Part shown: positions 3,354 to 46,938 of the stretch, piece after piece
Numbering within the stretch: position 1 is the first letter of the stretch
How the letters are laid out: the number at the start of each line of letters is the position of its first letter
Assembly (NCBI GenBank): GCA_024704765.1
Contig: JAKMXF010000111.1
Coordinates: 1,256,619-1,320,618, forward strand
Direction of reading: 5' to 3'
DNA length: 64,000 nt
Source: Oopsacas minuta
Taxonomy: Eukaryota; Animalia; Porifera
Position numbers and translations under genes: made by a program
The notes under the pieces: generated by a model
Databases searched by the model: none
Told to the model about the DNA's origin: nothing
What the model saw: the letters and a program-made list of their open reading frames with translations, nothing else

Positions 3354-6300
3354 CTAAATACATAATACACAAGGTCATGTAAAGAATTACTTTCTCATAA
3401 TTACATATGTTCTAGGTAGTTTTGAACATTAGGAATAAATCGCTAATAACGATCTCCAACTTGACAATTGTAATGCTCACCATGTTCATACAATAATTTA
3501 TCTAAGCATAGAATGGATTAGTAGTTTCTTCCAGCTTCCATAAATCGCATGAACTAATAGTTAGTGAAATTAAGTTTAATTGAAATTCAAAAGAGCTACG
3601 AATTACACTGTTTTATACAACCATTATATAATTATTACAAAACAATACAACAATAAATCAATACTTCAATCCAACTTATTCTAACTAATAAAATTACAAA
3701 ACTTTCATAAATGAAGTCATTTCTTGTAGGAGAAATTCCTAATTAACTTCTTCAGTTGGACCTGCATCTAACAAAACGATTCGTCAGAGGTAGCTAACAT
3801 CGATGAGATTTCCTGGAAACTAGGTCTGATCTCTGCATTTATTTGCCAGCACTCTAGCATTACTGAGAATATTCCTTCCGGGCAACCAGTGGGTCGATCC
3901 ATAACATCTGAATTAGCATATGCCTGCAATACATCTTCGTTACTATACCCAGGCCACGGCTTCTCACCTAGAGACCAGATCTCATAAAGCGTCATCCCGA
4001 AAGACCAGACATCCGATTTCTCCGAGTAACGCTGGTAAAAGATAGCTTCAGGTGCTGTCCACTTGAGAGGGATCTTACCTCCCTTTGATGTGTAATAATC
4101 TCCTTCATCTCGGAGCTGTCGAGACAGGCCGAAGTCTGAAATCCGACAAGTGAGGTCTTTAGCTAACAACACATTGCGAGCAGCTAAATCTCGATGAATA
4201 AAGTTTTTGGAAGAGAGATAAGTCATGCCCGAAGCAATCTCTCTTGACAGCTTCAGGTAGAGAGAATACATCTGGGAACGTTGTAGAGTAGATTTGCGGA
4301 GTACCACTACGAATTTTAGAAGTTCTATATGCATTAGCTCAGTAACTATCATGAACGGTTCTGTAAGACTAACAATTCCGAGTAGACGGAGTACATTAGG
4401 GTGTGAGAATTGACCCATAATGGCTGCTTCCTGCAGGAAAGTAAGCTTCAATTCTATGGTGGATGAATCGTGGAGAGTCTTTATAGCCACAAGAAGAGGT
4501 TTGTTTGCCTTAAAGGGGTTGGATTCCATTCCTGATGTGTGCCAGAGACCCTTGTACACAGCCCCAAACTGACCTGATCCTATTTGTTCCTGTCGCTCAA
4601 TAGCACTCACAGCAATTTCGCGATATCTCATATCGGACATTTGATTGAATAGTAGACTCAGGTTCTTAGGAGGTTCCAAGTATATACTCCCCTGCTCGAA
4701 AAATGTATCGGATTTCTGTGATAATTGTCTTGAAGCTGATCCATCTGCACTTTCATACACACTTTCAGACCTCAATTCATATCTTGGCACAACCATTGAA
4801 CTTCCAATATAAGAGCATTGACTCGCTTCTTCATAAGTCTGATACAGGTCATTAACATCATCTGATATACCTAACTCTCCGTATATGTTCTCGTAGGATT
4901 CTGGAGCTGTCTTCATAGCAAATGGCGGTAGTATTTGACCCTGTTCATTAATACTGGAATAAGTAGGATTAGGAAAGTTGAGATTAAAGTCTGTGCTTTC
5001 TACGTGAGGATTTACTTCTGATTTCGGACTCCTATATACCACTTCATTCACGGAACATTCTGATGGAACTAATTGTATATCTTGTGGGTTGACCTCAGCA
5101 TATATTTCATCTTGGGCAGGTCTATTTCCTTTGGATTTATGAGTTCGAGTTAGGAGCAGAAAGAACAGGACAACTACCAGAATTACTATTACAATAATAA
5201 TCACAATCACGACAATAGGAACTGCGTATACTATTGGAAAGGTTATAGCTTCCACAACAGGCCCTGTAGAAACATCAGTAAGAATTGTTTTTGACGTTGA
5301 TTCTAATTGTATGTCCCGACAGGTATTTCCAATGGATCCAGATTTGCATTCACAAATACCATTATTACAAGATTGATTAGGTTTACATTTAGGTTCACAT
5401 TGAAGAAACTGACAATTCGGATAAAGAGGATCACATTCACAAACTCCTTCATTGCATATTTGTGTTTCTCTACATTTAGGAGAACAAGCTTTGGTCTCAC
5501 AACTATCACCGTAATACATGTGAGTGCATTCACAGGTACCATTTGAGAGACAATTACCATCATTCTGACAATCTGGTTGACAAGATAAATTCTGACAACT
5601 ATCACCATAATAAAGACCAGGGCATTCACAGGTACCATTTGATGTACAATTACCATCATTCTGACAATCTGGTTGACAAGATAAATTCTCACAACTATCG
5701 CCATAATAAAGACCAGTGCATTCACAGGTACCATTTGATGTACAATTACCATCATTCTGACAATCTGGTTGACAAGATAAATTCTGACAACTATCACCAT
5801 AATAAAGACCAGTGCATTCACAGGTACCATTTGATGTACAATTACCATCATTCTGACAATCTGGTTGACAAGATAAATTCTGACAACTATCACCATAATA
5901 AAGACCAGGGCATTCACAGGTACCATTTGATGTACAATTACCATCATTCTGACAATCTGGTTGACAAGATAAATTCTGACAACTATCACCATAATAAAGA
6001 CCAGGGCATTCACAGGTACCATTTGAGAGACAATTACCATCATTCTGACAATCTGGTTGACAAGATAAATTCTGACAACTATCACCATAATAAAGACCAG
6101 TGCATTCACAGGTACCATTTGATGTACAATTACCATCATTCTGACAATCTGGTTGACAAGATAAATTCTGACAACTATCACCATAATAAAGACCAGTGCA
6201 TTCACAGGTACCATTTGATGTACAATTACCATCATTCTGACAATCTGGGTGACAAGATAAATTCTCACAACTATCGCCATAATAAAGACCAGGGCATTCA

Positions 6301-9300
6301 CAGGTACCATTTGATGTACAATTACCATCATTCTGACAATCTGGTTGACAAGATAAATTCTGACAACTATCACCATAATAAAGACCAGGGCATTCACAGG
6401 TACCATTTGATGTACAATTACCATCATTCTGACAATCTGGGTGACAAGATAAATTCTCACAACTATCGCCATAATAAAGACCAGTGCATTCACAGGTACC
6501 ATTTGATGTACAATTACCATCATTCTGACAATCTGGTTGACAAGATAAATTCTGACAACTATCACCATAATAAAGACCAGTGCATTCACAGGTACCATTT
6601 GATGTACAATTACCATCATTCTGACAATCTGGTTGGCAAGATAAATTCTGACAACTATCACCATAATAAAGACCAGGGCACTCACAGGTACCATTTGAGA
6701 GACAATTACCACCGTTCTGACATCCTAATGGACATAATATATCTTCACAAGTATCTCCACTGTACCCACTAGGACAGTAACACATACCAGCGTGACAACT
6801 ACCGCCATTCTCACAATTATTAATACACTCACATTTTTTATTGTTGACACAGACGCCGGTAGCTGGACATGGGTTCTCATCATTACAATTTTGACATGTG
6901 ACTTTGAGCAATTCAAAGCAATCATCTACCACTGAAAACGTACATTCGGATAAATGTAATTCTGTCCCAATGCAATCAACCTTGACTCCACTTGTCGCTT
7001 CACCCTGTTCCCAACTTTCTTTAGCACTTGGTCTATCCCTACTTAGACAAAATACTGACGATTCATTCAAACTCCAACCCGAAAAACAAACGTCGGAATA
7101 TGTATCCCCATTCTCACAAATTTGTAGACGCTTGCCAGCTCTCTTGGTTTGTCCATAATTACATGAACTCGAAGTTTGCAATACGACAGTACCAGCAATT
7201 AACAGAAAAGCAAAAACTAACATATTAATATAATAGTATTTGTATATTCTATATGTATTTATATAAATTGGCCCTAGATAGTTGACTGTAATAGAATACT
7301 CTCTCTCATCCAATAATAGTGTTACTAAAAATAATTACTTTAATACTAGATTTGAGCATAATAAATGTCAAATATAATTATATATATATTAGCCTTCGGC
7401 TCGCAAACAAAAATTCACATACGTACATATGAGCAATTTGTGAAATTCAGATTCAGCATACTTGGTATATATATATATATATATATACCCTTGTGTAGTC
7501 ACTGACAGCAAGTTTCTATGTATAATTTAGATTTCGTTAGTTGTTTACATTCATAAAACAACAAATAAATATAATCATCTACAGTAGAACGCGGATAACT
7601 GGATAACTCTCAGTTTATACGTATAGTCGAGGAGAACATAGCCAAAATAATGCGTACTAATACGATTTTTGCTGAAAGTGATAAATAGGAGTATGTCAAT
7701 GCAGAATCCAGCGGGTGACACCTTGGAAGTCTCCTGATTCTGCACTTATACACTTTCAGCAAAAACTACTACTGTAATAATTCTTCTTCCAAACAAAATC
7801 TCAAATCACCGCCTGTGCCCACGTAATTTCCAGCATTTCAAGATTTTTATATTATTTGTTTACTTTATATTCATAAAATCAACAATAAATTTACATATGA
7901 GAAATTTAAGGATGCCAAATTCGGATTCAGCGTACTTAATTAGGGGCCGTTCAATGTTACGCAACTCAAAATTCTCTACATTCTGACCCCTTCCCCTCCC
8001 TATGTCATGCCTTTTGACAGTTTTTGTAATACAAAAAGAATGAGACTGTTACGCCTTGTATACCACCCCCTCTCCTTGGAGCGTTACGTAACGTTTGAAC
8101 GACACCTTACCCTTATACGTCTGTTGAGTCCGTGATAACATGTTGAAACCTAATCTCGAGCATGCTATTGAATTGTATATAGAAATGTATGAAAATATGA
8201 TTAACTACCTAAAAGGTGAAAACTATACACATTAGAATCTCTTCACATGTTAGGTACACATCTAGACGTCACAACGAGTATAAATGCCAAATTTGGTGTC
8301 TTAATCTCTAAAGGTGTGAACAGGAGAGTGAACACACATATACACACCAGTATATACATATATATATATATATGCCAAGTCAAACATTTTAGTACTGAGC
8401 CACTATGTGATATATTATATCTCAGAATTACGAAATTTTGACGAATTATATAACAGCATACTACACTTCCTTGACAACCGAGAAAGAGACAATAATTGAG
8501 ATTTAATGTAATATACGAACCCGGGGTATACAAGATTCATGAACGGACGCTGGTGGTGTTGATTTTAGACGATGAACGTGAATGAACTAAACGTGCGTCA
8601 ATTTGAGACGGATTGAATTGCATTAATTCAGTCTGTTCGTGAACCTTTCATTCCCTGAAAAGTACTAGATTCATAATCCGATATATTAAACTTTGCTAAT
8701 ACGCAAGCTTGATATTAGAGGAATTATTTCCAATACAAAATAGACTACAAAATAGAGTCTCTGAAAACTTGCTATTAGTCGAATATTGGTAATAGACGAA
8801 TTGCTAATAGGCGAACACCACTATTAATAATACATAATATAATATCTAAAACATTGGCTATTAATTCATTTAGAACTTCACCAAAATTGTACCTACTCTG
8901 CAAGTATTAGGCAAATTAGATATTCAATTAAGCATTATACTTGAGAGGGAACAGAATTTGTATTGATTTGTATATAATATTTTTTATATTTTCCAAGCTG
9001 ATCAGTGTAATTAGCGCTAGGTTAATTCCTCAATCTTTATGTTATCAAAGTATCTGACAGCATATGGAGTTATTGATGTAGGTTGGGTATTATGATCTTT
9101 GGTATCATGATGAAATCGTGAACGCATAAAATCCCATGGAATAGCATAAGAATAGACTATTGAGCGAGTTCTTTTTGGCGTTTTTGTTTCTACATCAGAT
9201 GACTCTTTGTTAGGAAAGTTTGAATTACTATATATTCTCTGTACTCTATGCGATTGGTTACACTTCACTTTCTTAATTGCTATACAGAATAAAGTACACA

Positions 9301-12300
9301 AACACACGCACAGTACGCCACAACCACAACCAACCATAAAAGTTGTAGATATTATCACACATAAGATTAACCAATTATCTGGTATTGATGTAATGGAATT
9401 AGGGATCAAACAATCTGAATTAAACAAATTATTACCAAAGCTATCATCAGAAGAATGATCAAAGCATACACAGGTACAATTTGTTAGACAACTACCATTG
9501 TTCTGACATTCTTTAAGACATAAGATTCTCTCACAACTATCACCATAATAAAGACCAGGGCATTCACAGGTACCATTTGAGAGACAATTACCATCATTCT
9601 GACAATCTGGTTGACAAGATAAATTCTGACAACTATCACCATAATAAAGACCAGTGCATTCACAGGTACCATTTGATGTACAATTACCATCATTCTGACA
9701 ATCTGGTTGACAAGATAAATTCTGACAACTATCACCATAATAAAGACCAGGGCACTCACAGGTACCATTTGAGAGACAATTACCACCGTTCTGACATCCT
9801 AATGGACATAATATATCTTCACAAGTATCTCCACTGTACCCACTAGGACAGTAACACATACCAGCGTGACAACTACCGCCATTCTCACAATTATTAATAC
9901 ACTCACATGTTGTATCGTCGACACAGACGCCGGTAGCTGGACATGGGTTCTCATCATCACACATTTGACATGTGACTCTGAGCAATTCGAAGCACTCATC
10001 TACCACTGAATACCTACATTCGGATAAATGTAATTCTGTCCCAATGCAATCAACCTTGACTCCACTTGTCCTTCCACCCTCTTCCCAACTTTCTTCAGCA
10101 CCTGGTCTATCACCACTTAGACAAAATACTGACGATTCATTCAAACTCCAACCCGAAAAACAAACGTCGGAATATGTATCCCCATTCTCACAAATTTGTA
10201 GACGCCCATACCTACTCTTGGTTTCTCCAAAATTACATGAACTCGAAGTTTGCAATACGACAGTACCAGCAATTAACAGAAGAGCAAAAACTAACATATT
10301 AATATAATATAGTTACAATAATTTTCCTTACTCCTTACTTATATATTTTCAGTATTATGATGTAATATTCTTTCAATTCATAGTTCCTAGGCCATACATG
10401 GATGCGTCCCAAAGCACATTTAACCGAGCACATATTAAATACAATATACAAGTAACTCATAATTTGAGAATAACATAAGTAAGCATATGTAAGACGAATT
10501 GAGAATAACATACGAAAACATCTTGTAAGCAAAATGTAATCCACTCTAATAATGCATCCAGTACAAATCTGCAACCAATATACATTTATGGCATAACTAC
10601 CGTGAGATTGCACGGGGAGACACATTTTAATTGTTCATCATTTTAAGGAGCGAATAGTCAGTGCCTACTACACACAGTCAACTCCCGTAATATAGAAACC
10701 CCAAGGGACCGTGATAATTACAGTCAGGGCCGCCTATTATCAACCCACAAGGGACCAAAAATCTTGTTCATAGAATTAATACATATAGAGACTTCATATT
10801 AAGGGAATTTAATTTAATACAAATCCTATGTGAATGATTTCTGGCTTGGTTCATAATAAGAGAATGTTCATAATGAGCACCTTTACTGTACTTCGATATA
10901 AATAGGATTCGATATAGCCGATGAAACTCTTAGGGATTATGTATATATGTATAATTTCTATATATCCGTGTTCGTTAATACGAAAGTTGACTGTGCTATC
11001 ATAAAAGTTAATTAGATACTTAAAGAATCCATAATAACGTAATTCACATAAATATCTTACTTATCAATAATCTTGATTTGTTTGCAAGCTCTTATATAGA
11101 TTAACACTTAGTCTAGGATCGTTCCCAATAATCAAGACAGGATCAGTTTGGGGTACAGGGGGCGGTAACTCTATTTCAATTAGCATACTCAATACTTTAG
11201 AAAAGGTTGGCCTTTCTGATTTTTCACTTCTCCATGTTTCTATCATTGTTTTGTATACATCTCGATTACAGCCTGTAGGTGGAGGTAACTTTGTCCCTAC
11301 TGATAGAGCCCTGACTATTTCCTCATTCGTAGAGTATGGCCATGGTCTCATTCCCAATGACCAGATCTCGTACATTGTCATGCCGAGTGACCACACATCA
11401 CTCTTTTCAGAATACTTTTGATAGAACACAGCTTCTGGAGCGCACCATCTGAACGGGATCTGTCCTCCCTTTGAAGTGTAGTCACCTTCCATACCGAACT
11501 GACGCGTCATTCCAAAGTCTGCAATACGACAAGTTAAGTTTTTAGATACCAAGACATTTCTTGCAGCAAGGTCGCGATGAATAAACTGCATTTCTGCTAG
11601 ATACTTCATACCAGCTGTGATATTGAGACAGAACTGTAGTAAGAGTGAAGGTAACAGCTGACATTTATCAAGTTGGGATTCTTTCAGCTTAAGCAAAAGT
11701 TCCCTCAGCTCAGATTTGAGTAGCTCTGTAATCATCATGTAAGGAGAACTACTAACTACACCAATTAACCTCAATACATTAGGATGTTTGAATTGGTTTA
11801 ATATCATTGCTTCCTTTATAAACGCATTTTCTGCTTCATTATTTGTATAATCTTTTAATTTCTTAACAGCTACGTCAATAGTACCATCAGGTGAACTATA
11901 TTGTGCACTGTAAACGATTCCAAACTGCCCTTGTGCTATTAACTGTCCAATTTTTAATTTGTCTTTATTTACTTCGATATTAGGATCATGACGTAGAGAT
12001 TTGATATACCGTGGAGGCTCAACGTATATCTTCCCAGAAGATGTGAGATGGTGATTCTTACTCACTCCTCGCTTAGAAATAGACGCATAATATTCTGTAT
12101 CAACATAACCGTCAAGGATGGAGGTATAAAAGTCTTCTTCCTTATGACAATCAAGTAGATTCGATTTACTTTTGGTAGTTGTAGGAGATTTTGGTTGGAT
12201 TGGTGATTCATATTTCCTTGAAGAATTTGCGTATGCTGTTAATGATGAATTAGAGGGTGGGACAGGAGGTATGGCCATCTGTGGTATAGGGTCAATAGAG

Positions 12301-15300
12301 TCAAAACTCCCACCAGCGGATTCAATTCTAGGTCTTCTCTCATAGCTTAGATTTTCGCTGGGATATGAATCGAAGCTGTCATCATCCATGAGCGGAAAAG
12401 TTCTATCCGTGTGGTCATTATTCGCTAAGGTGCCATAACGATTACTTGAATGAGAAACACTTCGAATATCACCATGATGTGTATTTTTAAATCTCATACA
12501 TTTGATTAAGACGAGTATTATACTGAATAGAGCGATCACGATAAGGATAACTGATAGGACAGATCCCACTACTATGCCTATTTCGTTATTATTCTGTTGA
12601 GATGTACCATCTACATCTAATTCACATTTAGGTTCTAGACTATTGTGGCATAAATGACAATAATCAGATTCATTAACGTAATTACATGTAGATGTGAAGT
12701 TGCAATATGAAATATATTTATTTCCATCACAATTCGTTAAAACCGGTTTCAGATTATTATTTGAGCTCTCATAACTCTCAACTGATCCAATATGAACCAT
12801 CCCTAGACAGAATTCATTGGTAGAGATATCGCCCAATCCTTCATCATTGAAACATAAAAACTTCCATTCGAGGGTCCTATTATTACTATTCAAACATATT
12901 TGAATAACATTAGATAAGTTTCCTATACTAGTTACTCTTTTGTCTCCGTCTCTACTACAACTTTGAGCGAATGTGTATGATAGATAAAACGTTAATACAG
13001 AAAGAGACAGCAAATAAACAAGTAAAATATTGGAATACATAAAAGCGAGAATCCAATTTCTTCCAGTACGATATTATTGATAAAGCAATATTATCCATGA
13101 TTATGAGAATATCTACCAGAAGAGTGATATATGATATGTACTTCTGAATAGATGTACCTATGACTATCAATTGATGCCTCCAAATGCAGTATAAATGAAA
13201 AAGAATACTTTGGGGCCTCTCTACGTGAGGCGTATTTCGATCATTTTTACTCAAAATATTTCAGTAATAACAAATTCCATAAGCTGGATCCTGACATTAA
13301 ATTGAATAATAAAATTGGACTCGTAACAGAGCAAAATGGATAAATAATAGATTAATAGAATAAAGAATAAATGTGAATCATTTTCAGATGCTGTGAATTT
13401 ATGTTCTATCAAAATTGATTGAGCATTTTATAAATTCAATATTCGGTATCAGGCTTATTCATTAGAAGATTAAAAAGTTAGTAATCAAGAATCCAAAGAA
13501 CACTTGGATATTTGCCTAAAAGTTGGTCTCATTTTTGGATCTTGCCTCCATGTCTCTAACATGATTTGGTACATTTTTTCTGGACAACGGACAGGTTGTG
13601 AGAGGGTGTCTCCGTTTGTAAGAGCTTGTATAACTTCCTCATTATTACAACCTTCCCATGGCTTATCTCCCAGTGACCAGATCTCGTACAGTGTCATACC
13701 AAATGACCACACATCAGATTTCTCAGAGAATTTATTGTAGAACAGAGCTTCTGGAGCTGTCCAACGGAGAGGTACCCTTCCACCACCTGAAGAGGTGTAG
13801 TAATCATTGTCACAATCTATTCCTCGTGACATACCGAAATCTGCCACACGTACACTCAAATCTTTCGCTACTAACACATTCCTAGCAGCTAAATCTCTAT
13901 GAATGAATTTCTTATCAGCTAGATGCTCCATTCCAGCTGCTATCTCCTGACTGAACTTCAGCAGTAGATTTTGAATATTTAGTTTGTCTGAAGAAGCAGT
14001 AGGTCTAATTTGGAGTAAGAGTTGTCTCAGTTCTGTCTTGAGGAGTTCTGTTACCATCATCCATGGTTCTTGAGTTGTCAGTATACCGATAAGTCTGAGT
14101 ACGTAGGGATGATGGAACTGAGTGAGAATAGCAGCCTCCCTCATGAAATCCATTTTGGTATCTTTGTTAGTACCCACAGTTTCCTTCAACGTTTTGATAG
14201 CTACAGGAATGTCTCCCTTCCCTGTACTGTATTTACCTCTGTACACAACACCGAACTGACCAGAAGCGAACTTTTCTCCTATCTCTATATCTTCTGCTCT
14301 AATCTCATGGATATATGCATCTACCATGTGTTTCAATTCAGGGAAGTTCTTAGGAGGCTCCAAATAAGGGCTATCAACTATAGTGCTCTTGTATAAAGAG
14401 TTAACTGATACACCAAAATGAATAGAGTCTATCAGCTGATTTGGATCAATCTTCTGACTTAGTAGGTTAGCATACATACTTGGTTCTATGACCTCCCCAC
14501 CCACTATACTCATATAGTGTTCTATGTTATTATATTCTAGCAGAAAATGAGTTGGATCTTGATATGGCGATGGATCTTGTGAAATGGTGTGATATATATT
14601 TGATGAGTTTCGAAGTGAATTGATAGGAGAATCACAATATATTTCAACCACTTCAGAATAAATTACTTCTTCTCCAGCAACATTGTCACAAGTTGTAACT
14701 GTAGGGTTATTGGTATTTAAATCTCTCCCTTCAAGATTATCAAGAATTAAAGTACGTGGCTCTTGCAAAAGCTTATCTGTGGATTTCTTCCTGCAAGTAA
14801 GACAAATAACTAATATGATGAGGACAGACAAAATAATGGATATACTGATAGCAATAACAAGACTGATGACCAAACCTATGATACTAATGTTATTATCGAC
14901 AGCTGACTCAGAGCAATTTCCTTGATTTAACCCAGATGAAGTACAGTCGATAGTTGGCAAAATAGTTTCTGTCGTAGACAAAATAGATTCTGTCGTAAGC
15001 ATAATAGTTTCTGTCGTAGGCATAGTAGTTTCTGTCGTAGACAAAATAGTTTTTGTCGTAGGCAAAATAGTTTCTATCGTAGGCATAGTGGTTTCTGTCG
15101 TAGGCATAGTGGTTTCTGTCGTAGGCATAGTAGTTTCTGTCGTAGGCATAGTAGTTTCTGTCGTAGGCATAGTAGTTTCTGTCGTAGACAAAATAGTTTC
15201 TGTCGTAGGCATAGTAGACTCAACATTAGTTTGGTTAGAAGTTGGTATTTGTGTAGATATGGTCGTACTAATTGTTGTTAATGGTTGAGTTAATTGTTGG

Positions 15301-30300: not shown

Positions 30301-33300
30301 ACTCTCTCGTGAGCTAACAACCTCAGCTTGTACCGGGTTATTATTCTCCTCAGTCACAGAACGCCGGACCTTAGCTACACCTACTATTCCTCCATTCCCT
30401 TTATTGTTCATAAATGTTACGAAAGGGTAACTGTACTCGCAAGATTGTCTCGGAATAATCTTATGGGAGGGCTTAAGAGGTATATTGAGATTCTGTATTC
30501 TATCACGGGGACCAACTGGAGGGCGAGGAGGAAGGGGACGAGTCTCAAAAGAATTGACAGGATTGTTCATTTCCTGATAAGATTCCGTGGCGGGAGGAGA
30601 TTCTACATGAGTGGTTATATTCATATCTGTGTAATCGTGTAGAATAGAGACATGATGATTCTCTAAGTTAGTTATATTTTGTAAGTTAAGTTGATGGGAT
30701 TGAGTTTCGTTCCCTGCCATTCGACGCGATCCTAACCTAGCAATCCTTTTCTGTGATTTTCTCTTCCCACAAAGACGACAAGCAACCAAGGCAGGAATAC
30801 AGCACAACAAGCATATGTGACATATAATGATTGCAGTAACACCCACGCTAGGAATAATTAGAGTTAAATAGAGAGGATATCCGATATCTAGACCTAATAA
30901 TCCTGTCGGAGCAACACTAACATCAGTAGACGTAGATATATTATTAAGGTCAGAAGCAGAAAACTCACAGCGGGAGCCAAAAAACTCACTGGGACAGTAG
31001 CAATCATTGAGGACACAAACTCCACCATTCTGACATATGATACTGTCATCATTACAAACGGTTACAGTGCAAACTTGATTAGGAGTACCAGGTACACAAG
31101 CAGCAGGTAGGCAAACTTTCATATCTTCCAAGCATACTGTTACCGAAGTATCTTCTGATTTTATTAATGTTATAAAATGGCATATTAAAAAGAATATTAA
31201 AGTACTCTTCATTTCAGAGATATGGTAATTTGTTTGTAGATAAGTTATGTTAGATTAGATTTAATGTTCTATTTATCCACCTAGAATCTACGTGGTTTAT
31301 AAACCGGATTTTAATAAGAAGTAGTTTAAATCATTCAAATTCACAAAATATTACAAGAACTGTGTCTACACGTAATGTCAGCACAAATAAGGACAACACA
31401 ATTTGTGTAGGAGTCACATCAGATCATGATATCTCTATGTTCGAATATAAGCTCTATAATTACGTGAGATTACAATTAATACTCTAATAAAATGATCCTA
31501 CAATTCAACCTGATTCTAGAGATAACCAAACCAATAAAAAATTCACTACAAATACTTTGAATTCCCTAATAAGGATTGACCACAGTAAATCAGTTTGCTT
31601 TGTTAAGAAAGCTTAGCTAATATTCTGAATACTCGGTACACATTTAGACATATTCAACTAAGTATAATTAATTTCTAACTATTCTCTGAAAGTTTACGAA
31701 TCATTTGTAATTTATTTCTCTGAACATAAATATGTGTGAATGTTTTGCTTGGATTTTTCAAAGGGAATATTCATGAGTTCCGCTCAATGCAACTAGAATA
31801 TTCAATTTCTTCAGGCTAGCTACAAGTTTGGAAATTAACTACACATATAACAGACACCTCATGATAATCTCAGCTGGCATAGCCTTGCCGGAAATATTAT
31901 GAACTGATCCTGGCGAGTAGTTAAATTTAAGATTGCGTATACAGTTCAATACATGAGATGATGTGCGTAGAACAATACAATATATATAGTAGATAAGGAA
32001 GTGGTATGTTACTTATTGTACGAAGTAAACCTATGAAAAGTGTCTATGTAGACTAAATTTTACCTGAATATCTTCAAAATGACAAGAATGACCTGGGTTG
32101 ATTAATTTATGTGCAAACAAATCAATTCATAAATCTCGTCATGAATATTTAGAATTATTCAATAATAGGTTTGATAATATAATCGAATAAACTACTATCT
32201 CATATATTTGCTTTTACAAAGAGCACAGTTATCAAGACAAAGGCCAGCATCTAATCATTTTAGCAGCCTTGGAGGGTAGAACTAACGAGTGTGTAAGAGA
32301 TGCTAAACTGATAAAGAAAATATTAAATATTCAGATTGCTTAATATTGTAAAAAGAATTAAAATTGCGCGAGAAATATTTACTAATTGTATATAGCTGTG
32401 GCCTGTATATTAGCAGAGATTAGTTTGTATTTTTAGGGTACTTAGAAATTGTCGATATACGTATTAAGAAGTAATATGAGAATGCGGACAACTTGCATAG
32501 CCGAATAGGTATACTAACTCATATGAAAAGAGTTAAGTTTGAAGAAATATAGATGAGACTAATATTCAGCTTTATTTTCACAGCATTTTGGAAACAAATA
32601 GTAGCACCAGAAGTGAGAGAAGTATGTCAATCACTAGGTGCAGTGAGAGAGTTCACAAACTCAGCGTATCCCCAACTCTGCAATGACGTTGGTGGGATGC
32701 TTGAATGGAATTATTTTTGTAACAATATCATTATGAATGATGGTAACGTAATTTGCAGAGCACTAGGTTATCCAGGCTACGAATCAGTCGAAGAAATTCA
32801 TTTGGACATATTTAATCCAATAACAAAGATAGCTAATCTGAACTGTGCTGGAAATGAGACAAGATTGACCGATTGTCCATATTCTGAAACAACTAATAGC
32901 TGTATGGTAGCAAAAGGGTTGATATGCACCAGATGTAGTGTCAATTCAATGTGTTCAGGTCCAATAGGGCAGTGTACAATGAACGGGAAATGTAAATGTT
33001 CAGAGGGCTGTATAAGCGGGTACTGCTATCTGGGGAGGTGTATATGTTCAGATGGGTTTGCTGGTACTACATGTAATGAGTGCGATCCTCAATGTGATAA
33101 TGGAGGTATATGCTCTGCTAGCGGGATGTGTGAGTGTATGTCACTTTATTCAGGTGACAGATGTGAATTCAATAACAGCATAATAACACCGACTAATAGT
33201 ACTATATCTATTGTTGATAGTCTAACCTTGATTATCATTGCTGCAGCTGTTCCTTCACTTATATTCAGCTGTACATTGATAATAATCTGCTTCGGAATAC

Positions 33301-36300
33301 TAGCCTTCCTAATGTTCTTTGTGTCTCAAATAAAACCGTCCTTGGGTAGGAAGAAAGTTGAGAATACTAAAATGACTGAAATGACTGTGCAAAACACTAA
33401 CAAACAATTTTCCAACAGAAAACCTCACGAGTATGAGCTAGAATTCGAAAATTCGCACGATTATTACTACATTAGAAATAGTCAAGTTGGACAGAATTCA
33501 TCTAATCCATTCTTGACGACCCAAGTAAGAGATGATAATTATGAGATAATAGAGTCAAGAAACATGTCTAATCAAGCTAAAAAACAAGAAGACCCGCCGC
33601 AGGATTTCTCAACTAATTCTACTTCAAACCTGGTGGATAAAGATCCGAAGTCAGATTATGTAATTGATGATATTAATGATTATTCTTAAGTTTCCTGATA
33701 TTTTTGAATAATATGACACTGAAATATAAATTTATAATTTAGTTCATTCGTGATTTAAAGGAGCACTATAATTAATTTACAGTAAGGGTCACAAATTATG
33801 AACATTCTTTTCTCTAATTATAAACCAAATCAGTGGCCCCAATAACTCATTCCCATAGGATTTGTATTAAAAGTAGTGGGCATCGCTTGCTTGCGCTACA
33901 CGAATCAGCTTTCTTATGTCCCCAATAGTGAACAAATATTCACAATATGTTGTTTACAATATTCATATTCGGAATCAGCATACTCGATTACCCCAGTATA
34001 ATGTTTATTTGTTGTTGTTGTTATGTTGTGTAATATTTGGTTCTGGACTTTATGAACTGAACCTATATAGTTCTATACGGGGGCGTGACAAACATACAGA
34101 CACACACAAAATACTGTTCAATTAATCACAATGTAAGATTCGAGAATTTACGGATACCCTCAAGGGCGGGCCTGGAGTACGACCTTCTCTCCCTCTCATT
34201 TATGAAATTAATTTGACCAGGATAATGAAACTTATAACTTTCAAGAATATCTGAAACTATGGATATGTAAACATTCTAACAAATATATCGTATTAATTAT
34301 CGTTCATATTATCGATTACATAAAATGACCTCTGGACTACATCTGAGGTAGAATTAGTTGGGAAATCAGGTAACAGGTCATCTTTAGCTCTATCTGATTC
34401 ATTAAACGTGTTTCTTGGCTGTATTGACTTAGAATTGCCATTATAAACTGGAATAGTTACTAATGGATTCGATGAGTTCTGTTCAACTAGTGTATCTTGA
34501 ATGCAGCAATAATTATGAGAAATATCGAATTCAAGCTCATACTGTGGAGAGTTTATATAAGAAGATTTCTCAGAGCTGTGCTCTGTTATTACAGTCATTT
34601 TAGCATTTTCATCAACTGTTTTCCGACCGAATTTAGGTTTCATTAGACACACCATAATTGCTAAGCAAGCTAATATTCCGAAGCAGATTATTATCAAGGT
34701 ACAGCTCAATATTAGCGATGGGACAGCTGCAGCAATGATTATCAAGGTTAGACTAGAATCAGTAGGTACTACTTCAGGGAAGAAACTAGTATTAGTCGAA
34801 GGGAATTTTACTGTTGTATTATTAAATTCACATCTTTCACCTGAATAAGATGGCATACACTGACACGTCCCGTTAGCAGTACACACACCTTCATTCTCAC
34901 ATTGAGGGTCGCATCCACTACATGTAGGACCACCAAACCCATCTGAACATAAACACTTCCCCAGAAAGCAGTACCCTCCGTTTTCACAGTCATTGAGACA
35001 TACACATTTCCCATTCATTGAACACTGTCCTCCTAGACACATAGAATTATTCGTACAACTGATACATGATAGTACTGTTACAGAACATGTCAATAATTCA
35101 GAATAAGAACATTGATTCAAAGTAGTTTCATCTCCCATACAGACTAGGTTGTCTATAGCTAGAGCTGTAACGGTCATAGAGGTGGGCGTGGCGGAATCTT
35201 GCATTGGAAAGCCAAGTACCTTGCAAAATACCTTGGCCTCCTTCTTACCGAAATCACCGCAAAAAGAATTCCATATTTGGGTTCCACTTGCATTACTACA
35301 GAGTTGAGGATACATGTCATTGTATAATCTCACTGAACCTAGTGATTGGCATATTTGTGGAGCAGTTTGAGCTTCTATTTGATACCATAATGTAGACAAC
35401 AGCAGATAGAGAATTAATCTCATTTCTACGCTGATAATATTGCGTATTTATTATTTTCTTTAGTTATCTACCAATTAGATATTAACTCCTTCAGAGTTTT
35501 CTTACTTTAAAGAATTATAAGAAATGAATAGTACCTACTTTGTAAATACTGCAATAAATGATATCTCAACTGGTAAAACTACTAGTGTATCATCTTACTA
35601 CCTAGATAAACCTTACCTGAGCATGGTATTCGCAATGGTTTAAGAATTGGGGCCACCACGAGTCCAGGGGTTATTTACAGACCTTAAACTCAAACCCATT
35701 TAGGAAAAATCAATTCTTTGGATTGGCCTTTACAAAAAATGTCCAGCCGACAGACTGTAGTGCAGCTCAGGGTTATGTATTTTGTTCTTTTCAGGGGCAC
35801 GTCTCCCCTGACCCCCCACGTGTGTGTGTATGCGTGTAGATGTTGCAATGCACCAGACCCCGACTGATTTTGGGCTCCTGGATCTAATAAATAGTTCAGG
35901 AGATTCAATATTATTAGTCCCCAACTGTACTTCATGTTCTATTCTCAAATCCTATGGATAAAATTCTAAATAAAAATCCTGCAATTGTACCCTGTCTAAC
36001 TTTTGGAACAAAATCTCTAGCATCAATTTGAAATATGTGCGAAAAAGTGTGAAAATATGATAAATCATGTAGATATCTAGCTTGCTTTTGTATTTGACAC
36101 ATAGAAAGGTGTTTTCACATATGATTAATATCACCAAAAAAGGTGTGAAATATTCACTTTAGAAAAATTCATACCCAAGTTGCAAATCTCCGACCAAAAA
36201 TGTACATGCGTACCAATTTTCATGTGAATCGGACTGCTATCGTAAGGCAGATTTCGAACGGCAGAAATTTCACAAATTGTTCCTCAAATAATGGATTAAT

Positions 36301-39300
36301 TATAGCATAAATGAAGGGAGGGGGTTTATTGAAACCCTAAAATATTATAACAATCAACAACTAGTGCAATTTTAATACGATAGAAAACTATAAATGTATA
36401 ATCGTACACAGTTGGTGATGGATTCCAGTAGAAATATTACTACAAATAATATCATTCATCAACACTTAAGACTCATCATATTCAACCACGGATTGGTTTT
36501 CGTAAGCATTCTCCTTCCAATCACTGTCCTGTTTTTTAAGTAACAAATTAGGAGATGAAGCTTCCATTAAAATAGGAAGATTTCGTATAGCAGGTTCTTC
36601 ATGATTTGATGCATTGACGATTTGATTTTCATAATTAGTTGTGGAGTCAAATCCTTCCCGATTTAAACTTGTTTTGGCTTCAAGCACAGAGTCTTCAACC
36701 TCATAATGAGAAGTCTTCTTTTCTGAGGGTTCATCTATGCTATTACTGTTTGGCATAGGTGGCCTGCTATCCATTTCTACATAAAAGGATTCATCCCGTG
36801 CAGGAGGTAGGGCAGGTGGCATCCCATGATCCATCATACGCCTTTCGTCAACGACTGTATAAATAGTTGATGTTCTTTCTAAGAAGTCCGGCATCTGTAA
36901 ATCAAGTTTTTCCGGTTTGACATTTTTATGCCACTTATTTTTCATCATAAAACATACCATAATACACAGGCACAAGCATAAAAACGATACCAATAATATG
37001 AAACCAAACAACACGCCAAATACGACAATGCCTAACAAGATAGGATCCGAGAAAATAGATGAAGTTCCAGTAACAGGAGATTCTGTTGTATTATTGATAA
37101 ACGTTGTAGTAGGAATGCAAATATTGTCTACTATTTGCCCAGCACAACAGGAAAATACGCCATCATTCAAATTAACAAGGCATCGACTGCTAGATGGACA
37201 AGGTGGAGAACATGTCATAAGAATTTCACAATATTCACCAGTGTAAGGAAACTGACATTCACAAATACCATTGTCTTGACAATTACCAGAGTTTTGGCAA
37301 GGTGAAGAACATGTCATAAGAGTTTCGCAATATTCACCAGTGTAAGGAAACTGACATTCACAAATGCCATTGTCTTGACAATTACCAGAGTTTTGGCAAG
37401 GAGGAGAGCATATCCTATCCTCACAGTCATCTCCTGCATACCCATGAAAGCAGACACACCCTCCTACGTAACACACCCCATTCTCACACTGTTTGCAGCT
37501 ACAAGTACCGTCAACATTACATATAGAGTCATCGTCACCTAAACAATCTGTATATGAAGTGCATGATTCACAAGTTAGTCCACTAACGTAATGACATAAA
37601 CCAGTCATTACATAACCGCCACACTCGGAAATGTTTGTAGGACTTGGATTTCCCAAACAAGCAAAGTTTGTATATTTAGGGGTTCCAATATCGCCTACGT
37701 ATACAGGCATTATCATTGCGTCATCATTGATGTAGCCACTTAAATAACAGAAATTCTCGCTGTTACCACCAGATGGTGCCCAGTTCCCGTTATAACACAT
37801 GGACATGAAATAGAGGCCAGCGTCAAAAAAACTAATCGAAATATTAGAGGCGTTGAAGTAAGCACATATTTGAGGGAATGATCTGTTAGAATCGTCGAAA
37901 TATATTCTAGTGTCACCTGAAATCTGACAAGGTTCTACGGGAGGACCTTCGATTCCATCCACAGGACAAAAGACCGCACAAAACAGGATTATAGAGGAAT
38001 AAATGAAAATTCTCATTTTGGATAAATTATTGTTCTTGGAGGTTTAGTAAATGTATATACTGAGGAGTTAAAGGCATATTGCTACCTGATGACCAATACT
38101 ATCCCAGCAACTTACTAGGTTACATGTTGCAAAGTACAAATTAATGCAAAAGTATGTCAAATCATTATTGTAACTCGAATAAAGTACTCCTATAATGTTT
38201 GTAATGTAAAGTGCTATTATTAGATGCAACATAGGGTGTAATAGGCGTGACGAGAGGTTAGAGAAGGACATTAATAAAGATATCTTCTACCTAGCAAAAT
38301 CAGAGATGAAAGAAAAACGATACTACAATAATTACATACTCGGATATTAATAATCATTTGTATTATACATATCTTAATGCAAGAATTCCATCTACACTCT
38401 GCTCCATTAAGATCAAACCAAATCATTTCTTAGGTAATCATCAAGTATTATTTATTAATTTTCTGTGTAAAGAGTGTACCCTTTAAAAAGTGAAATAACA
38501 CAATTGGATATGAGATGGAGAATATTTAACTGTGTATCAACAATAAATACACACTCTGGCTCTGGTCAAACATCAGGGCCGGTGCCACCGTGGGTGTCCT
38601 GGGTGTCCAGACACCTACTGCCACGAAAGACCTTTGCATTATCCTCTATGGTAGATGCTGTTTAGACACCCAAAAGCTTCAATAGGCGGCGCCGGCCCTA
38701 AATATCATAAATCTCCCGAAAAATACTAGCACATAGTAGTGAATCGGTCTGAAGATCCGAAGATGAGATATTCGTGAAAATGTCCCGATAATACTCGTAT
38801 ACTCTAACCAGAGTAGACTGAATTATATAATTACACAATTAAAATAGATAATCTTAACCATAAGCTGCCATAACTAATGTATAACTACGAGTAATATTAT
38901 GCTGCAAATGTCTACACACTACCATTATTCGAATTAACTAAATAGAAAAGGAAATTTATTTTTGAATAATTGTATATGATAGATATCATCACATAATATT
39001 CAGAGTAATATTAAGAAGAAAATTACAAATGAGATAAAAATAAAATTATCTCCAACTACCCACAAGGAAATATCCTAAAGTTATTGAACTTTGTGGGTTA
39101 ATATGGCTCGTACCACTCACAGTTTGTTATAGCGATTATAAAAGTGTGAAATCGAGTAGAATAATAAACAAACTGTACTAATGAATATATTATTCTATTA
39201 TCTGGTGATCTTATTATTAACTTATAACATACATGTTATAGTAGAGACGCGTAGTCTAACGGGAAACTACACTAGAGAACGATTAGTAACAGATGAAACA

Positions 39301-41158
39301 GGCTCGCGTTGTGTGAATGAATATCGCTACGAAAGTGATAATAATGTATCTTGGTTGAGGATATGTGCAGATGAAATGAGTGAGCATACTGTAAGCCTTT
39401 TGTGTAGAAATCTTCTGGATCTTAGTACAAACTCAATAGAGATAAATGATTCTGAATCTCCAAAGAATCGAAATGAAAAAGTGCGCATAGATTGTGATGG
39501 AGATGAAACCAGATTAGAAGAGTGTAATGTTGAAATAGTCAATTCCTGTAAAACAATCCTGCATGACAAAGTATGTGTTAACTGTAGCCAAAACTCCCAG
39601 TGTAATGGATCAGCTGTGTGTGGAAGCGGTGGAGTGTGTGTTTGTGAATTTCCTAATTTCGGTGCAGATTGTGAGTTGAGGAACTGCTCCCCTCCCTGTA
39701 ATATTAACCAGACTTGTAATAATCAAACTGGAATATGTCAGTGTAAAGTTCCATTCTATGGAAATAACTGCGAATTGAGAGGATCAGTTTGTCCAGCTCA
39801 ATGCTTGAATGGAGGTTCATGTAACTTTGCTGATGGTACTTGTCTATGTGCTAATAGTTACCATGGAGATGTATGTGAGTTACGAGTATGTATTCCAGCC
39901 TGTAAGAATGGAGGTGTGTGCATATCCCCTAATCACTGTAAATGTGTTAACGGTACGTATGGAGTGTTATGTGAAGAGGTGGACTCAGATATATTTCGTC
40001 ATGGATTAACGGTTGGTGTCTCACTTGCTGTTATAGTTTTTTTCATTTTAGTTATCATATGCATGATAATTTTGCTATGTATACAACTCAAAAAGCTAAT
40101 GAAGTATAAATTGGATGGAATCTCTATTCGCAAGAAGAAAATACAAAAAGAATTGAAAAGAGAAGTTCAAATGGAAGATTACGTAAATATTCCCAAAGAA
40201 ATACATAGGCAACAAGCACATCTTACACAAATACAAGCTGTCATACCGAATCTGAACCGAAACAGATTATCAGAAGTATACTACGCTATTCCGCAACAGC
40301 TAAGAAATACGGAATACAGAGAAGAGGGTTACTCTACTATGCGGTTACACTACGATAACGTAATCGCTGCAGAATCATGCCAGGATATAGAAAGCGGACA
40401 GCAAGAGCAGAGAACAGAAACTCCAGAATATATTGAGCTGCAATAGATATTCTGTCACATAGAGTGAGTAGATTAGTTTAGTTTAAGAAAGTTTAGGTTG
40501 ATACAAGATTTTCTATGTTCTAATTAAAATATTAATACAGTCTACATCTGGTAACTAGAATGCCCGTTAACTCGAACGAATATTCAGTTCACTTCGTTGT
40601 ACTTTTAGTACTTATCGCATCCGTTAACTCGAACATTCGATTTTTCCAACAGATTTTCAGGAATCGAATTACTGAATGTGAACTATATAGTATATTAATT
40701 AAATCTCCATTTGTGTCTGTGTGTCTGTGTGTCTGTCACGCTCCCATATAGAGAACATATAGGTTCAGTTCATAAAATCCAGAACTAAATACTACACAAC
40801 ATAACAACAACAAAACAACATTGTACTGGGGTAATCGAGTATACTGATTCCGAATATAATATCGTAAACAACATTTCCTAAATATTAGTTCACTTTTGGA
40901 GACATAAAGAAAGCAGATTTAAAGTTTATGGCAGTATCATGTTTGCTACGGTTAAGATGAGACCAGGGGGGGGGTCGACAAAGTGCGGCCCCTCATAGCA
41001 AGTTTGGGCAGCGCGGGCAAGCTTCAGATACTCACATAAACTAGCTATCTTCGCTGTAATAACTAATTCCATAACCTTATTTGCCACCCGAATCTTCTTG
41101 TTTAAGTACTTTTGTATATTTAACATAGCCTTATTTAAAATTTCAATTATTTCTTTAC

Positions 41159-41216
<58 letters not shown>

Positions 41217-41658
41217 GTAGTAGACAACAAATCTTTACGATTCAAGAACCTTTCTACGAAACTATTAGTCAACCACCTAACGAAGAACCCGATGATACTC
41301 CAGATGTCACAATCAATACCACAATTACAACAGATTTAGAATATACTAGTTCAGAAAATTCAAATGATCATCTCTAAACCAAACATGATTACATAGCCTG
41401 TCAGCAATCAACACTTTCAGAAACCACCATTGCTCAAATCCACTTTATATAGTAACTCCCATAAATAATATTAGTAAGCTCATATACGCTTTATCATCTT
41501 TCGTTACTCAGAAATCTAGAATGTTCCTTCAAACCTTAGAATAGCAGCAATCAGTTATATTTAGTACTATAGTTGTGTTTGTACTGATGAGCTGGATAAA
41601 TAGCCAGCGAAACAAATTATGTTATTGTCTACTACTATTAAATCTACATATACTCTTT

Positions 41659-41706
<48 letters not shown>

Positions 41707-44700
41707 TAATAATAACAATAATAATAACAACAATAAATGTATATATGAGAACCTTGAAATTCGGATTCAAGTCATTCAACCCAGTATAAATGTTGAGAGC
41801 AAATCTCTTCCAATATTTTCAGATTAGTAAATTTGTTTAATTGGATTCAGCATATTATATTTTGAATTTAATACTGCTTACTAAGGACAGGCTACATTTT
41901 GAAATTTTTCGGCCACTGAAAGTCTTAAAATGGTGAATGCGGCCCACTTTGCAGACCCCTGAAGTAGACTATGAACACCACACAGCTACACACACATAGG
42001 GTATACAATGTCACATCACTTTACAATCGTTTTATTAAGATTCGTATGACTCCATTTAAGAATATAAAAGGATTTTCAATAAATAAGTATCCAGTACATC
42101 AACCTGTTATATTGTTACTCGTTATTCTGTGAGTTCAGTATATTAGAAAATACGTCAATCGCATAACAATCAGTTAGATTAGTGGAATATATGGCGAAGT
42201 GGTTAATTACGTTAATTATTAAGTCAGAAATACTGAAAATTCTCCAAATAAGTTATGCAGAACAAAGTGCAGCTAATAAGGCGGTAAGTGTATGTGGGTT
42301 TCGAGAGATTACATTCAATCATTTTCCTAGTAGAACAGCCCTGAAGATATTTACGGGATTCATTAACAAAGAATTTTTGAGATTCGTACAATGTTTGCAT
42401 AAATCAATAGATTGTTGTAAGACAGTGATGTTGCTATCTATCTCATTCAGCAGGGATTCTCAAGTGGAATCAGACAGCACTTCTTCTCAATATCATATAA
42501 AAGAAACGTTCTCACTGATTTTGAGTTAAATTTACTCATGAATTATATATATTTACAATTTCTACTGCTGATCCTAGTTATAGCATACACAAACAGTGAG
42601 TCATGTGATGTGTATGGAGAGTTAAGAGAAGTGAAGGAGGGAAGGAAGAATTCCCCACAGGTATGTGATTACGATAATTCAGGTTCATTAAACTGGTACC
42701 AGATATGCGATAATGGATGGGATATAGATGATGCAGATGTATGGTGCAAACAGCTGGGTTATATTGAAGCAGAAAATAAAGGTAAATCAGTCAAGAAACC
42801 AGGTAATAATCGGAATACAGTAAAGATGAATAATTTCAACTGTAATCCTGATACAGACAAGAAGCTGGTGGACTGTTCTAATGTGAAACAAACCAATAAA
42901 TGTGATTATGTAACAGATATAAAGTGTAAGAGATGTGATAGTGATATACAATGTATTGGAGTAGGCTCTTGTAATATAGGTAGTGGTATCTGTAAGTGTT
43001 CAAACAACAGTACTTGTGGAGTTGGAATGATGTGCAAGGAAGAAAGATGCGAGTGTATACGCTCATCTTGTCAAACTTGTCAACAAGAATGTCAAAATGA
43101 TGGAATATGTCAGAATGATGGAACATGTGAGTGTGTTGGATTATATTACGGAGATAGTTGTCAGGATAAATTGTGTACCAATGAATGTCCTGATAATAGC
43201 TTTTGCGTTACAGTTGGAGAATGTGTAGTAACCGTCATACCAACCACAGAACCTAAAACTACACTTGTTGAAATTCCTATAACTACAACAAAACAATCCA
43301 TAGCTACAATAACTACAGAACGACCTACAACCATGCTATCTACTAAAGCACATATAACTACACTTCCTATTGTACTACCTACTGTAACCACAAAACTTTT
43401 AGAAGTAACTAATTCAGATCATTCAACAACAAAGCCTGAAAAAGAAGTACCAAACACTCCAGAACAAGATTCCAGGCCTGGTTTAACATTAATGGAAAAG
43501 CTAATACTGAGTATAAGTATCTCAGCAGGACTAGCTTGTATCATTATAACCTGTATTGCAGTCCTGTCAATTTGCTTTATAAGTAACATTAGAAAGAAAA
43601 GGAAGAGAGTACTCATGAAGGAGAATGAATACGAAGAGATGGCAGCTCTACCCAGCTGTAGTTTCCATGAGTCTGCTAACTGTTCTGATAATATTTCTAT
43701 CAGCTCTCCTATTGAATATGATTCGGTTGTAGAAGAGGTTATGTCTTATTCTACGATAGACAGTGTATCTGAATTTGTTAATGCAACAAACCAAGCTCCA
43801 TATTACTCTACAGTAAGAGAAAGCATCCCCGTTGATGAGGTAGCTGTAGAGGAACTGCCATACTACTCTACTGTAGGAGAAATAATACCAGCTATTAGCA
43901 TAGAAGAACCAGCTCCGTACTACTCTACAGTAGGAGAGAATAACCTAGATAGTGAGGCAGTTAATACGGAGGTACAAGCTCCATACTATTCTACAGCGGG
44001 GGATATATCAACAGGGAATGAGCCAGGTATATATGAGAGTATAGAGTTTGGGTATAGAGACTATGAGAATGTCAACGAGAACAATCCAATAGAGCCTTAT
44101 CTGATCACTTAGCGATATTTTTAATATGGACAGTTGGATACATATACTAATTTATTAAATCATTGTAAATGGCACGCAGTAATCTATAATGATACAATTG
44201 TAAGGATTGGTCTGAATTGAAATAAGATAATATGAAATATATTTTATCAATAAAACTCGATGTGTATAGGTGCAGAATTAATGGAGGAAATGGTAAATAC
44301 AAACTTGAAATAAAACAGATGTATGGAATGAAATGTTACAAATGTTTAACCCATCAGACTTGATATAATACAAATGCATGATGATACAAGTTACATGATG
44401 ATCAGTTGCAATCCTATCTGAGCCTATAGATGTTGGCTAGTACAAATTACAACATATATTAGTAAGTAAGTTTATTCGATTTTCACCAATTTGATTAGTA
44501 GTTAAAGGTCAAAAGCAGCTGAATTTTGTATGTACTGTACCAAATATCATACTAAGTGCTCTGCTGATATGATATACTACGTATGCAGTAACTTCAGAAA
44601 AAATGCAATCATTAAACACAATAAGTATCATGTCATGTATTATGCAACAATATATACCAAAATGTTGAAGTAATTTATTATTCATAAAAATACATACTTG

Positions 44701-46478: not shown

Positions 46479-46524
46479 AACTGGCTACACACTGATAATA
46501 TCAAATTACTTCTGAGCTAATATA

Positions 46525-46938
46525 ATGCAACGCAAAGAACACCCAATAACGATACGATTAGAGTATCTAGGCGTAGAAGATAAATACACAAGAGAGATGA
46601 TTCTCCTCGTATTTAACGACTTATTCGATGTGAAGATATGGCCAGAGCTGAGACTAATACTCCATCCAGACGAGAGTAAGCCCCCTCTGTTAGCTGGGAG
46701 ACCCTCAGCCGATGGACCAATTACACTGGTCCAACCGAGACCAAGCGAACGTCTTATAAGCCTACAGTCACTCTATTCAGAGCTCTCTCTTATACAGAAA
46801 AAATATTCAGCTAACTCAATTATGGTAGCGTTTGTGGATAGTGACAGTGCTATTGTGTACTACAACCTCAACGCTACAGATGTCCCTTCCAGTTACAAAA
46901 GTTGTCCGAAACAACAGACACTTCCAAATATTGCGTAG
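46525..46938 (+). CDS. TSEN15: tRNA-splicing endonuclease subunit Sen15, 137 aa
   Basis: N-terminal HP, VFNDLFDVKIW and C-terminal IMVAFVDSDSAIVYYNL match the Sen15 family pattern and size. Confidence 0.85.
   Translation: MQRKEHPITIRLEYLGVEDKYTREMILLVFNDLFDVKIWPELRLILHPDESKPPLLAGRPSADGPITLVQPRPSERLISLQSLYSELSLIQKKYSANSIMVAFVDSDSAIVYYNLNATDVPSSYKSCPKQQTLPNIA

Follow-up and report, generated by a model that had tools for sequence, protein, structure and literature searches.

A 64,000-nucleotide stretch of the genome of the glass sponge Oopsacas minuta (assembly GCA_024704765.1, contig JAKMXF010000111.1; the whole stretch is called the window here, with position 1 as its first letter, which is base 1,256,619 of the contig) carries GSTZ1, the gene for a zeta-class glutathione S-transferase (GST), with a cluster of 14 receptor genes, R1–R14, between its exons 5 and 6. 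We conclude with considerable confidence that GSTZ1 is an intact nine-exon gene and that its ancient intron 5, which measures 50–115 bp elsewhere, has grown to 41.3 kb by the settling of an intronless receptor family inside it. Mature mRNA joins exon 5 to exon 6 over the entire cluster. An earlier note on this DNA had proposed the nine-exon gene, the nested cluster, its origin in a small ancestral intron and a possible co-regulation of the receptors by the host; the evolutionary part of that interpretation turned out to be largely right, and the regulatory part went unsupported.

GSTZ1 mRNA joins exons 5 and 6 across the receptor cluster

We rebuilt GSTZ1 from the sequence as one gene of nine minus-strand exons, at the coordinates that the earlier note implies. 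Exons 1–5 lie at 46446..46478 (33 nt of coding sequence (CDS), with the ATG at 46478), 46331..46382 (52 nt), 45200..45267 (68 nt), 44903..44983 (81 nt) and 44698..44823 (126 nt, ending in ...IQPIQ), and exons 6–9 at 3275..3353 (79 nt, starting with NLRVL...), 3069..3121 (53 nt), 2374..2423 (50 nt) and 1775..1907 (133 nt including the stop codon). Every intron is GT..AG; intron 5 (3354..44697, minus strand, phase 0) measures 41,344 bp and the others 63, 1063, 216, 79, 153, 645 and 466 bp. The CDS of 675 nt encodes a protein of 224 amino acids (aa) that carries the Pfam domains GST_N/GST_N_3 (E 1e-15) and GST_C/GST_C_3 (E 1e-6) over its full length, and that aligned with zero gaps to its vertebrate counterparts, mouse MAAI (2cz2; E 9e-82) and human GSTZ1 (1fw1; E 1e-79). 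The N-terminal active-site stretch of the zeta class (SSCxWRVRIAL) is present in identical form as SSCSWRVRIAL. Judged by its sequence, the host is a zeta-class GST, or maleylacetoacetate isomerase, and intact. A sensitive tblastn search found no second copy of any GSTZ exon in the window; since each exon occurs there once, the halves do not come from separate local copies.

Elsewhere among glass sponges, the SSC of the zeta motif is replaced by STS in the species of assembly ERZ25071281 (exon 2, at about 9652-9714 of the locus L010 described below) and by SSS in Vazella; the motif cysteine is not conserved among these predicted proteins.

Four public runs from one study cover the locus. Three of them (X1–X3) are DNA-like, with long contigs through introns and flat depth. 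The fourth (X4), which comes from the study that made the assembly, is RNA-like, with a depth of 2,000–7,000 on exons and 0–20 in small introns and with spliced joints. In X4, the loose end at 44698 carries, in reverse complement, the first 30 bases of exon 6, and that at 3353 carries, also in reverse complement, the last 30 bases of exon 5; the junction between the two exons, which the earlier note had named as one of the checks to be made, was seen from both sides and at the predicted canonical sites. Every small GSTZ1 intron was likewise represented by joints or loose ends, among them 45267->46331 between exons 3 and 2 (skipping 1063 nt), 44823->44903 between exons 5 and 4, 3121->3275, 2423->3069 and 1905->2372 along exons 6–9, and a loose end at the exon 1–2 junction. 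Junction contigs had depths of 2646 and 2914 in the 5′ half of the gene and of 2845–3328 in the 3′ half, and this similarity indicates that most transcripts that begin also reach the end. Together with the single-copy exons, the RNA join bears out the claim that the halves do not stem from different paralogues. DNA-like contigs of X1–X3 cross both intron ends, running from R14 through exons 5–3 and from exon 6 into the kinase domain of R1. The best GSTZ match, an mRNA of Vazella pourtalesii that is 85% identical, is unbroken over the corresponding ...SSSIQPIQ NLRVLNKIG....

The public O. minuta annotation presents GSTZ1 as two genes, a 130-aa GST_N model (44391-46478) and a 107-aa GST_C model (1775-3489). 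The 5′ extension of the 107-aa model had no X4 support, with a depth of 0 at 3410-3543, and the 3′ extension of the 130-aa model had an X4 depth of about 5% of exon depth, a low signal that may represent the 3′ untranslated region (UTR) of R14. The nested genes are affected as well: R1 is annotated with 382 aa only and R5 with 634 aa. The one-gene structure corrects an annotation that splits a conserved tyrosine-catabolism enzyme into two truncated proteins, which would pass for gene loss or for a fragment in comparative studies of the 'gene-poor' O. minuta genome. This annotation contains 83 nested genes, as compared with 2,432 (12.4%) in Aphrocallistes vastus, a difference for which annotation settings were blamed (PMC10282587).

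Intron 5 holds 14 intronless receptor genes

All 14 long open reading frames (ORFs) of the cluster (3768-44112) lie inside 3354-44697 and make up 25,590 of the 41,344 bp of intron 5 (62%), leaving 414 and 585 bp free at its ends. The earlier note had these free ends right, as it had the range of 63–1063 bp for the other introns. Each of the guests is intronless and encodes one strongly hydrophobic segment of the transmembrane type; eight are in the host's sense and six are antisense. Past the 3′ end of the host, the stop of the cluster is known over 2.7 kb only.

Seven guests, R1 and R3–R8, encode a tyrosine kinase domain (PK_Tyr_Ser-Thr, E 1e-68 to 1e-83) behind an EGF or SRCR ectodomain, and with one transmembrane segment and a cytoplasmic kinase they are predicted receptor tyrosine kinases (RTKs). 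R1 (3768..7313, minus, the host's strand) is an X4-transcribed RTK gene with a multi-EGF ectodomain and an ORF of 1181 aa, in which the likely initiator Met is residue 31. It is followed by R3 (11064..13040, minus, 658 aa), R4 (13485..15884, minus, 799 aa, SRCR type), R5 (16990..18966, plus, 658 aa), R6 (21206..23752, plus, 848 aa, EGF type), R7 (25187..27493, plus, an ORF of 768 aa, EGF type) and R8 (27990..29891, minus, 633 aa), which is RTK-like with a short ectodomain. The other seven have an EGF/SRCR ectodomain and a short tail without a kinase domain. They comprise the predicted EGF receptors R2 (9017..10297, minus, 426 aa), R11 (34293..35423, minus, 376 aa), R12 (36466..38016, minus, 516 aa) and R13 (39181..40446, plus, 421 aa), the EGF receptor-like R9 (30220..31212, minus, 330 aa), the SRCR/EGF receptor R10 (32553..33689, plus, 378 aa) and the SRCR receptor R14 (42538..44112, plus, 524 aa). 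No kinase remnants were found beside the kinase-less genes, kinase matches in the window being exactly seven. For R12, R13 and R14, another species has orthologues that are likewise kinase-less and about as long, so that these three are maintained genes and not decayed kinases.

R1 and R14, the two guests that we examined on reads, each have RNA contigs of their own in X4, so that at least these two have their own transcripts. Both GSTZ1 and R1 are abundant in this run. The R1 contig ends near 3561, with an ATTAAA (at 3580) 14 nt ahead of its end, which means that a sense-strand poly(A) site is in active use only 208 nt away from the exon 6 acceptor. Most of the guests are followed by poly(A) hexamers, but these are expected anyway in DNA of 35% GC.

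The R14 contig (2156 nt) extends 615 nt beyond the stop codon and takes in, on the opposite strand, the first 30 nt of GSTZ1 exon 5 (43900-44727). Either the R14 3′ UTR may overlap the host exon in antisense, or the contig may be unspliced host RNA. Within 5303-6772, two long ORFs in alternative frames (469 and 409 aa), on both strands, run across the EGF repeats of R1; they are most likely by-products of the repeat and not genes.

Intron 5 is ancestral and was originally short

We mapped GSTZ proteins on their own loci in the sponges Geodia, Oscarella and Corticium, the teleost Scomber and the coral Orbicella. A homologous phase-0 intron, at IQP(I/L)Q|NL, has a length of 73 bp (Geodia), 50 bp (Oscarella), 64 bp (Corticium) or 115 bp (Scomber), and is absent from the GSTZ gene of Orbicella. 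Because the same intron is short in other sponges and in a teleost, the host intron is ancestral and was short, and its size in O. minuta is derived, as the earlier note had supposed; its position is at least as old as the ancestor that sponges and vertebrates share. Intron 5 of O. minuta is about 360 times longer than its teleost counterpart and about 120-fold longer than the mean intron of its own genome, in which introns average 341 bp and number 1.59 per gene (PMC10280926).

All eight O. minuta GSTZ1 intron positions are found in other animals, and the same eight in the teleost. The internal exons of the teleost gene measure 52/68/81/126/76/53/50 nt. The earlier note had given identical internal exon sizes for vertebrates, and in the teleost this held for six of the seven; exon 6, with 76 as compared with 79 nt, is one codon (3 nt) shorter than in O. 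minuta.

A gene for protein O-mannosyltransferase (PMT) adjoins GSTZ in Geodia barretti (L001 764-3419) and in Oscarella lobularis (L002 1-1443). The PMT–GSTZ pairing represents an old microsynteny that was not seen beside the GSTZ1 of the O. minuta window.

The 5′ end of the nest is shared with another glass sponge

Using the single-copy neighbor of GSTZ1, Sen15 (46525..46938, plus strand), as a synteny anchor, we reached 20 kb of contig ctg49543 in assembly ERZ25071281 (locus L010). The order there is two R12-like genes (minus), an R13-like gene (plus), an R14-like gene (plus), GSTZ exons 5 to 1 (minus), Sen15 (plus), MRG, PA-RING, PARG, LTA4H and TRAF, with gene order and orientation as in the O. 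minuta window. R12 is thus represented by two orthologous copies and R13 by one, and the R14 orthologue stands beside GSTZ exon 5. GSTZ exons 1–5 are intact (30/52/68/81/126 nt), and exon 5 closes with an identical donor, ...IQPIQ|GT. Beyond it lie at least 9 kb and four receptor genes, and these 9 kb contain no trace of GSTZ exons 6–9. The N-terminal half of this GSTZ is 93% identical to that of Vazella and 83% identical to that of O. minuta; taken with the shared 5′ layout, this Vazella-like identity suggests that the nest is older than the split of Oopsacas from the Vazella-like lineage.

The two loci have diverged strongly in sequence, with 43% identity for R14 and 60% for Sen15, and BLASTN revealed no conserved non-coding sequence at the 5′ intron ends of O. 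minuta and ERZ25071281. For R1 and R3–R8, clear orthologues of each gene exist on large contigs of related assemblies, and the records place orthologues of R1, R4, R5 and R7 on a contig whose length, 648,217 bp, is that of ctg49543.

Most of the kinase diversity predates the species compared

In a maximum-likelihood tree of 82 kinase domains, the window kinases formed six well-supported orthogroups within one hexactinellid clade, and several related assemblies are represented in every one of the six. The locus also pinpoints a lineage-specific glass sponge family of receptor tyrosine kinases together with its kinase-less partners. Since the orthogroups are common to several assemblies, most of the diversification is older than these species. 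The earlier note had pictured the intron as an expanding nursery of receptors. Part of this picture stands: relatives have local tandem duplicates (three R1-like genes and two R12-like genes), and two groups of O. minuta kinases on other contigs (LOD99_3350/3352 and LOD99_14942) branch within the cluster diversity, which fits, but does not prove, their export from the cluster. Most of the expansion is old, with six orthogroups that predate the split from related glass sponges.

R4 and R5, which are arranged head-to-head, have kinase domains that are 95% identical (13488-14327 and 18121-18945), and they group with each other in the tree rather than with their orthologues. The related species shows a like pattern in its own copies, P0130/P0133/P0134. 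This grouping by species indicates concerted evolution by gene conversion.

In assembly ERZ25072730 (L009 3849-18132), three R1-like EGF receptor kinases stand in tandem on one strand, at a place where O. minuta has R1 and the kinase-less R2.

Origin and persistence of the nest

We propose that intronless single-pass receptor genes settled and diversified within GSTZ1 intron 5. The host's RNA polymerase would read through the whole intron, eight same-sense genes included, and the 41-kb intron would then be removed in cis; the receptor genes, for their part, would all be independent transcription units with their own promoters. Sense guests may be tolerated because, being intronless, they offer nothing to mis-splice. 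Of the nested genes of Drosophila, 71% are antisense, and the sense guests are preferentially single-exon, a pattern read as selection against mis-splicing (PMC3814207), which fits the tolerance of eight intronless sense guests at this locus. Precedents exist for nests and for intronless sense-strand guests (PMC1891103, PMC3240667, PMC3814207). We further suggest that the nest persists passively, mainly because its loss would break GSTZ1 or the receptors, and not through co-regulation.

Several points weigh against this interpretation. Eight sense-strand poly(A) sites need to be bypassed, and that of R1, 208 nt before the exon 6 acceptor, is demonstrably used. The RNA support consists of k-mer contigs from a single unstranded run of the assembly's own study, not of full-length cDNA, and the DNA runs are probably those used for the assembly, hence weak as independent support. 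The intron interior holds near-identical repeats (the R4/R5 kinase core), and the read support lies at the intron ends. The 3′ end of the nest, with R1 beside exons 6–9, was seen in O. minuta alone; around the R1-like P0209 locus of ERZ25072730, no GSTZ exons were found within 10 kb, a result that is uninformative on nesting there.

We weighed three other explanations of the locus. One holds that it is an artefact, produced by misassembly or by half-genes of different paralogues, and it can appeal to the two separate genes (130 and 107 aa) of the public record and to the origin of the DNA runs in the assembly's own study. However, the halves are linked in RNA, from both sides and precisely where the splice sites were predicted, the 5′ extension of the 107-aa model has no RNA support and the 3′ extension of the 130-aa model only about 5% of exon depth, which may be the R14 3′ UTR, each exon is single-copy in the window, and the independent assembly of another species has the same 5′ layout. 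We rejected both the misassembly and the two-paralogue readings on the RNA junction and the cross-species synteny, and give this explanation practically no credence. The need to bypass eight sense-strand poly(A) sites in cis also invites the idea of trans-splicing, in which exons 1–5 would be transcribed from the GSTZ1 promoter and exons 6–9 from a start inside or after R1, and the two RNAs then joined. The machinery appears to be present in glass sponges, as about 4% of the cDNA reads of A. vastus are reported to carry a spliced leader (PMC10282587). The lack of any RNA contig over 3410-3543, just upstream of exon 6, can be counted for this idea and also against it, as it gives no sign of a transcript starting upstream of exon 6 or of R1 read-through. 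The splice sites, moreover, are canonical GT..AG at the ancestral intron position, and junction depths are equal in both halves. Genic trans-splicing of this sort is rare in animals, and we consider it very improbable here.

Functional coupling would explain the nest differently: GSTZ1 transcription or shared control elements would set receptor expression, and the nest would have been selected as a regulatory unit. A second glass sponge has kept the 5′ end of the nest although the sequences have diverged strongly, one RNA run contains both GSTZ1 and R1 in abundance, and a like idea was raised by the authors who described the GMC/Flo-2 nest (PMC1891103). Against this, conservation is to be expected just as much if a nest is simply hard to lose, no conserved non-coding sequence was detected at the 5′ end of the intron between the two species, and the expression of nested and host genes in Drosophila and other insects is poorly correlated or not correlated (PMC3240667, PMC3814207). 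We therefore regard coupling as unlikely, and co-regulation of the locus by its host, as the earlier note had envisaged, found no support in the data of this analysis. A more daring version, which we treat as a long shot, is that glass sponges make RNA polymerase II ignore used intronic sense poly(A) sites, and that read-through, by transcriptional interference, switches a syncytial tissue between the 14 receptors that it may display. If this were true, the nest would be a regulatory device instead of a frozen accident. With its sense majority, the locus offers a natural test bed for the transcription and splicing of long introns full of functional poly(A) sites, and for whether nests trap and preserve gene clusters.

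Comparison with known nests

Complete genes in the intron of an unrelated host are classically exemplified by OMG/EVI2A/EVI2B in NF1 and the TIMPs in synapsins. Such nests hold one to three unrelated guests, mostly antisense, as compared with the 14 related guests of GSTZ1. The view of the earlier note that nests usually number one to a few genes needs a qualifier, as a nest of 12–13 genes has been published: the second intron of Drosophila Flo-2 (83.2 kb) contains 12 GMC oxidoreductase genes and CG14406, with 10–12 in mosquito, bee and beetle, and it was proposed as the birthplace of family members now located elsewhere (PMC1891103). As at GSTZ1, a single very large intron is filled by many paralogues that are unrelated to their conserved host. 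The GMC nest occupies the homologous intron across distant species, and the GSTZ1 nest shares its 5′ end with ERZ25071281. The two differ in that the GMC guests are nearly all antisense, whereas 8 of the 14 GSTZ1 guests are sense; antisense orientation characterizes the insect nest and does not define the class. Moreover, the Flo-2 intron lies near the 5′ end of its host and GSTZ1 intron 5 in the middle of the coding region, and the GSTZ1 guests are predicted membrane receptors, unlike the GMC oxidoreductases, in a genome whose mean intron is only 341 bp (PMC10280926).

Paralogous membrane-protein genes in one host intron, within a conserved synteny block, are also known from the TipE cluster, which lies in the last intron of CG18675 across insects and whose expression is unrelated to that of its host (PMC3240667). 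That cluster has only 4–5 genes, and in some lineages genes are documented to have left the nest. Within the same class as O. minuta, 12.4% of the genes of A. vastus are nested, most genes of that genome have a single exon, and O. minuta is said to share many of the nests (PMC10282587). The A. vastus paper gives counts and the example of glassin; its main text contains no kinases, no multi-gene receptor nest and no GSTZ1 (PMC10282587). The arrangement is accordingly not new in kind, an abundance of nested genes being already on record for glass sponge genomes. What is particular to the GSTZ1 nest is its 14 guests, their sense majority, the approximately 120-fold excess in intron length, the position in the middle of an enzyme gene and its omission from the public record. 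It is among the largest documented multi-gene nests, and it occurs in an early-branching animal.

Surroundings of the host gene

GSTZ1 and Sen15 are arranged head-to-head. Their start codons are separated by 46 bp in O. minuta (46478-46525) and by 36 bp in ERZ25071281 (L010 9964-10001), and the gap looks like a conserved bidirectional promoter, for which it is a candidate.

Single-nucleotide differences from the window over 1705-3458 fall at different positions in X1/X2 and in X3/X4, although these runs are filed as one sample; two or more haplotypes or individuals were sequenced. Dispersed repeats occur at 1400-1667, 45398-45504 and 45933-46039, the latter two inside GSTZ1 intron 2, and the same stretches stand out in the DNA-like runs by a 5- to 100-fold excess in depth and by many divergent loose ends.

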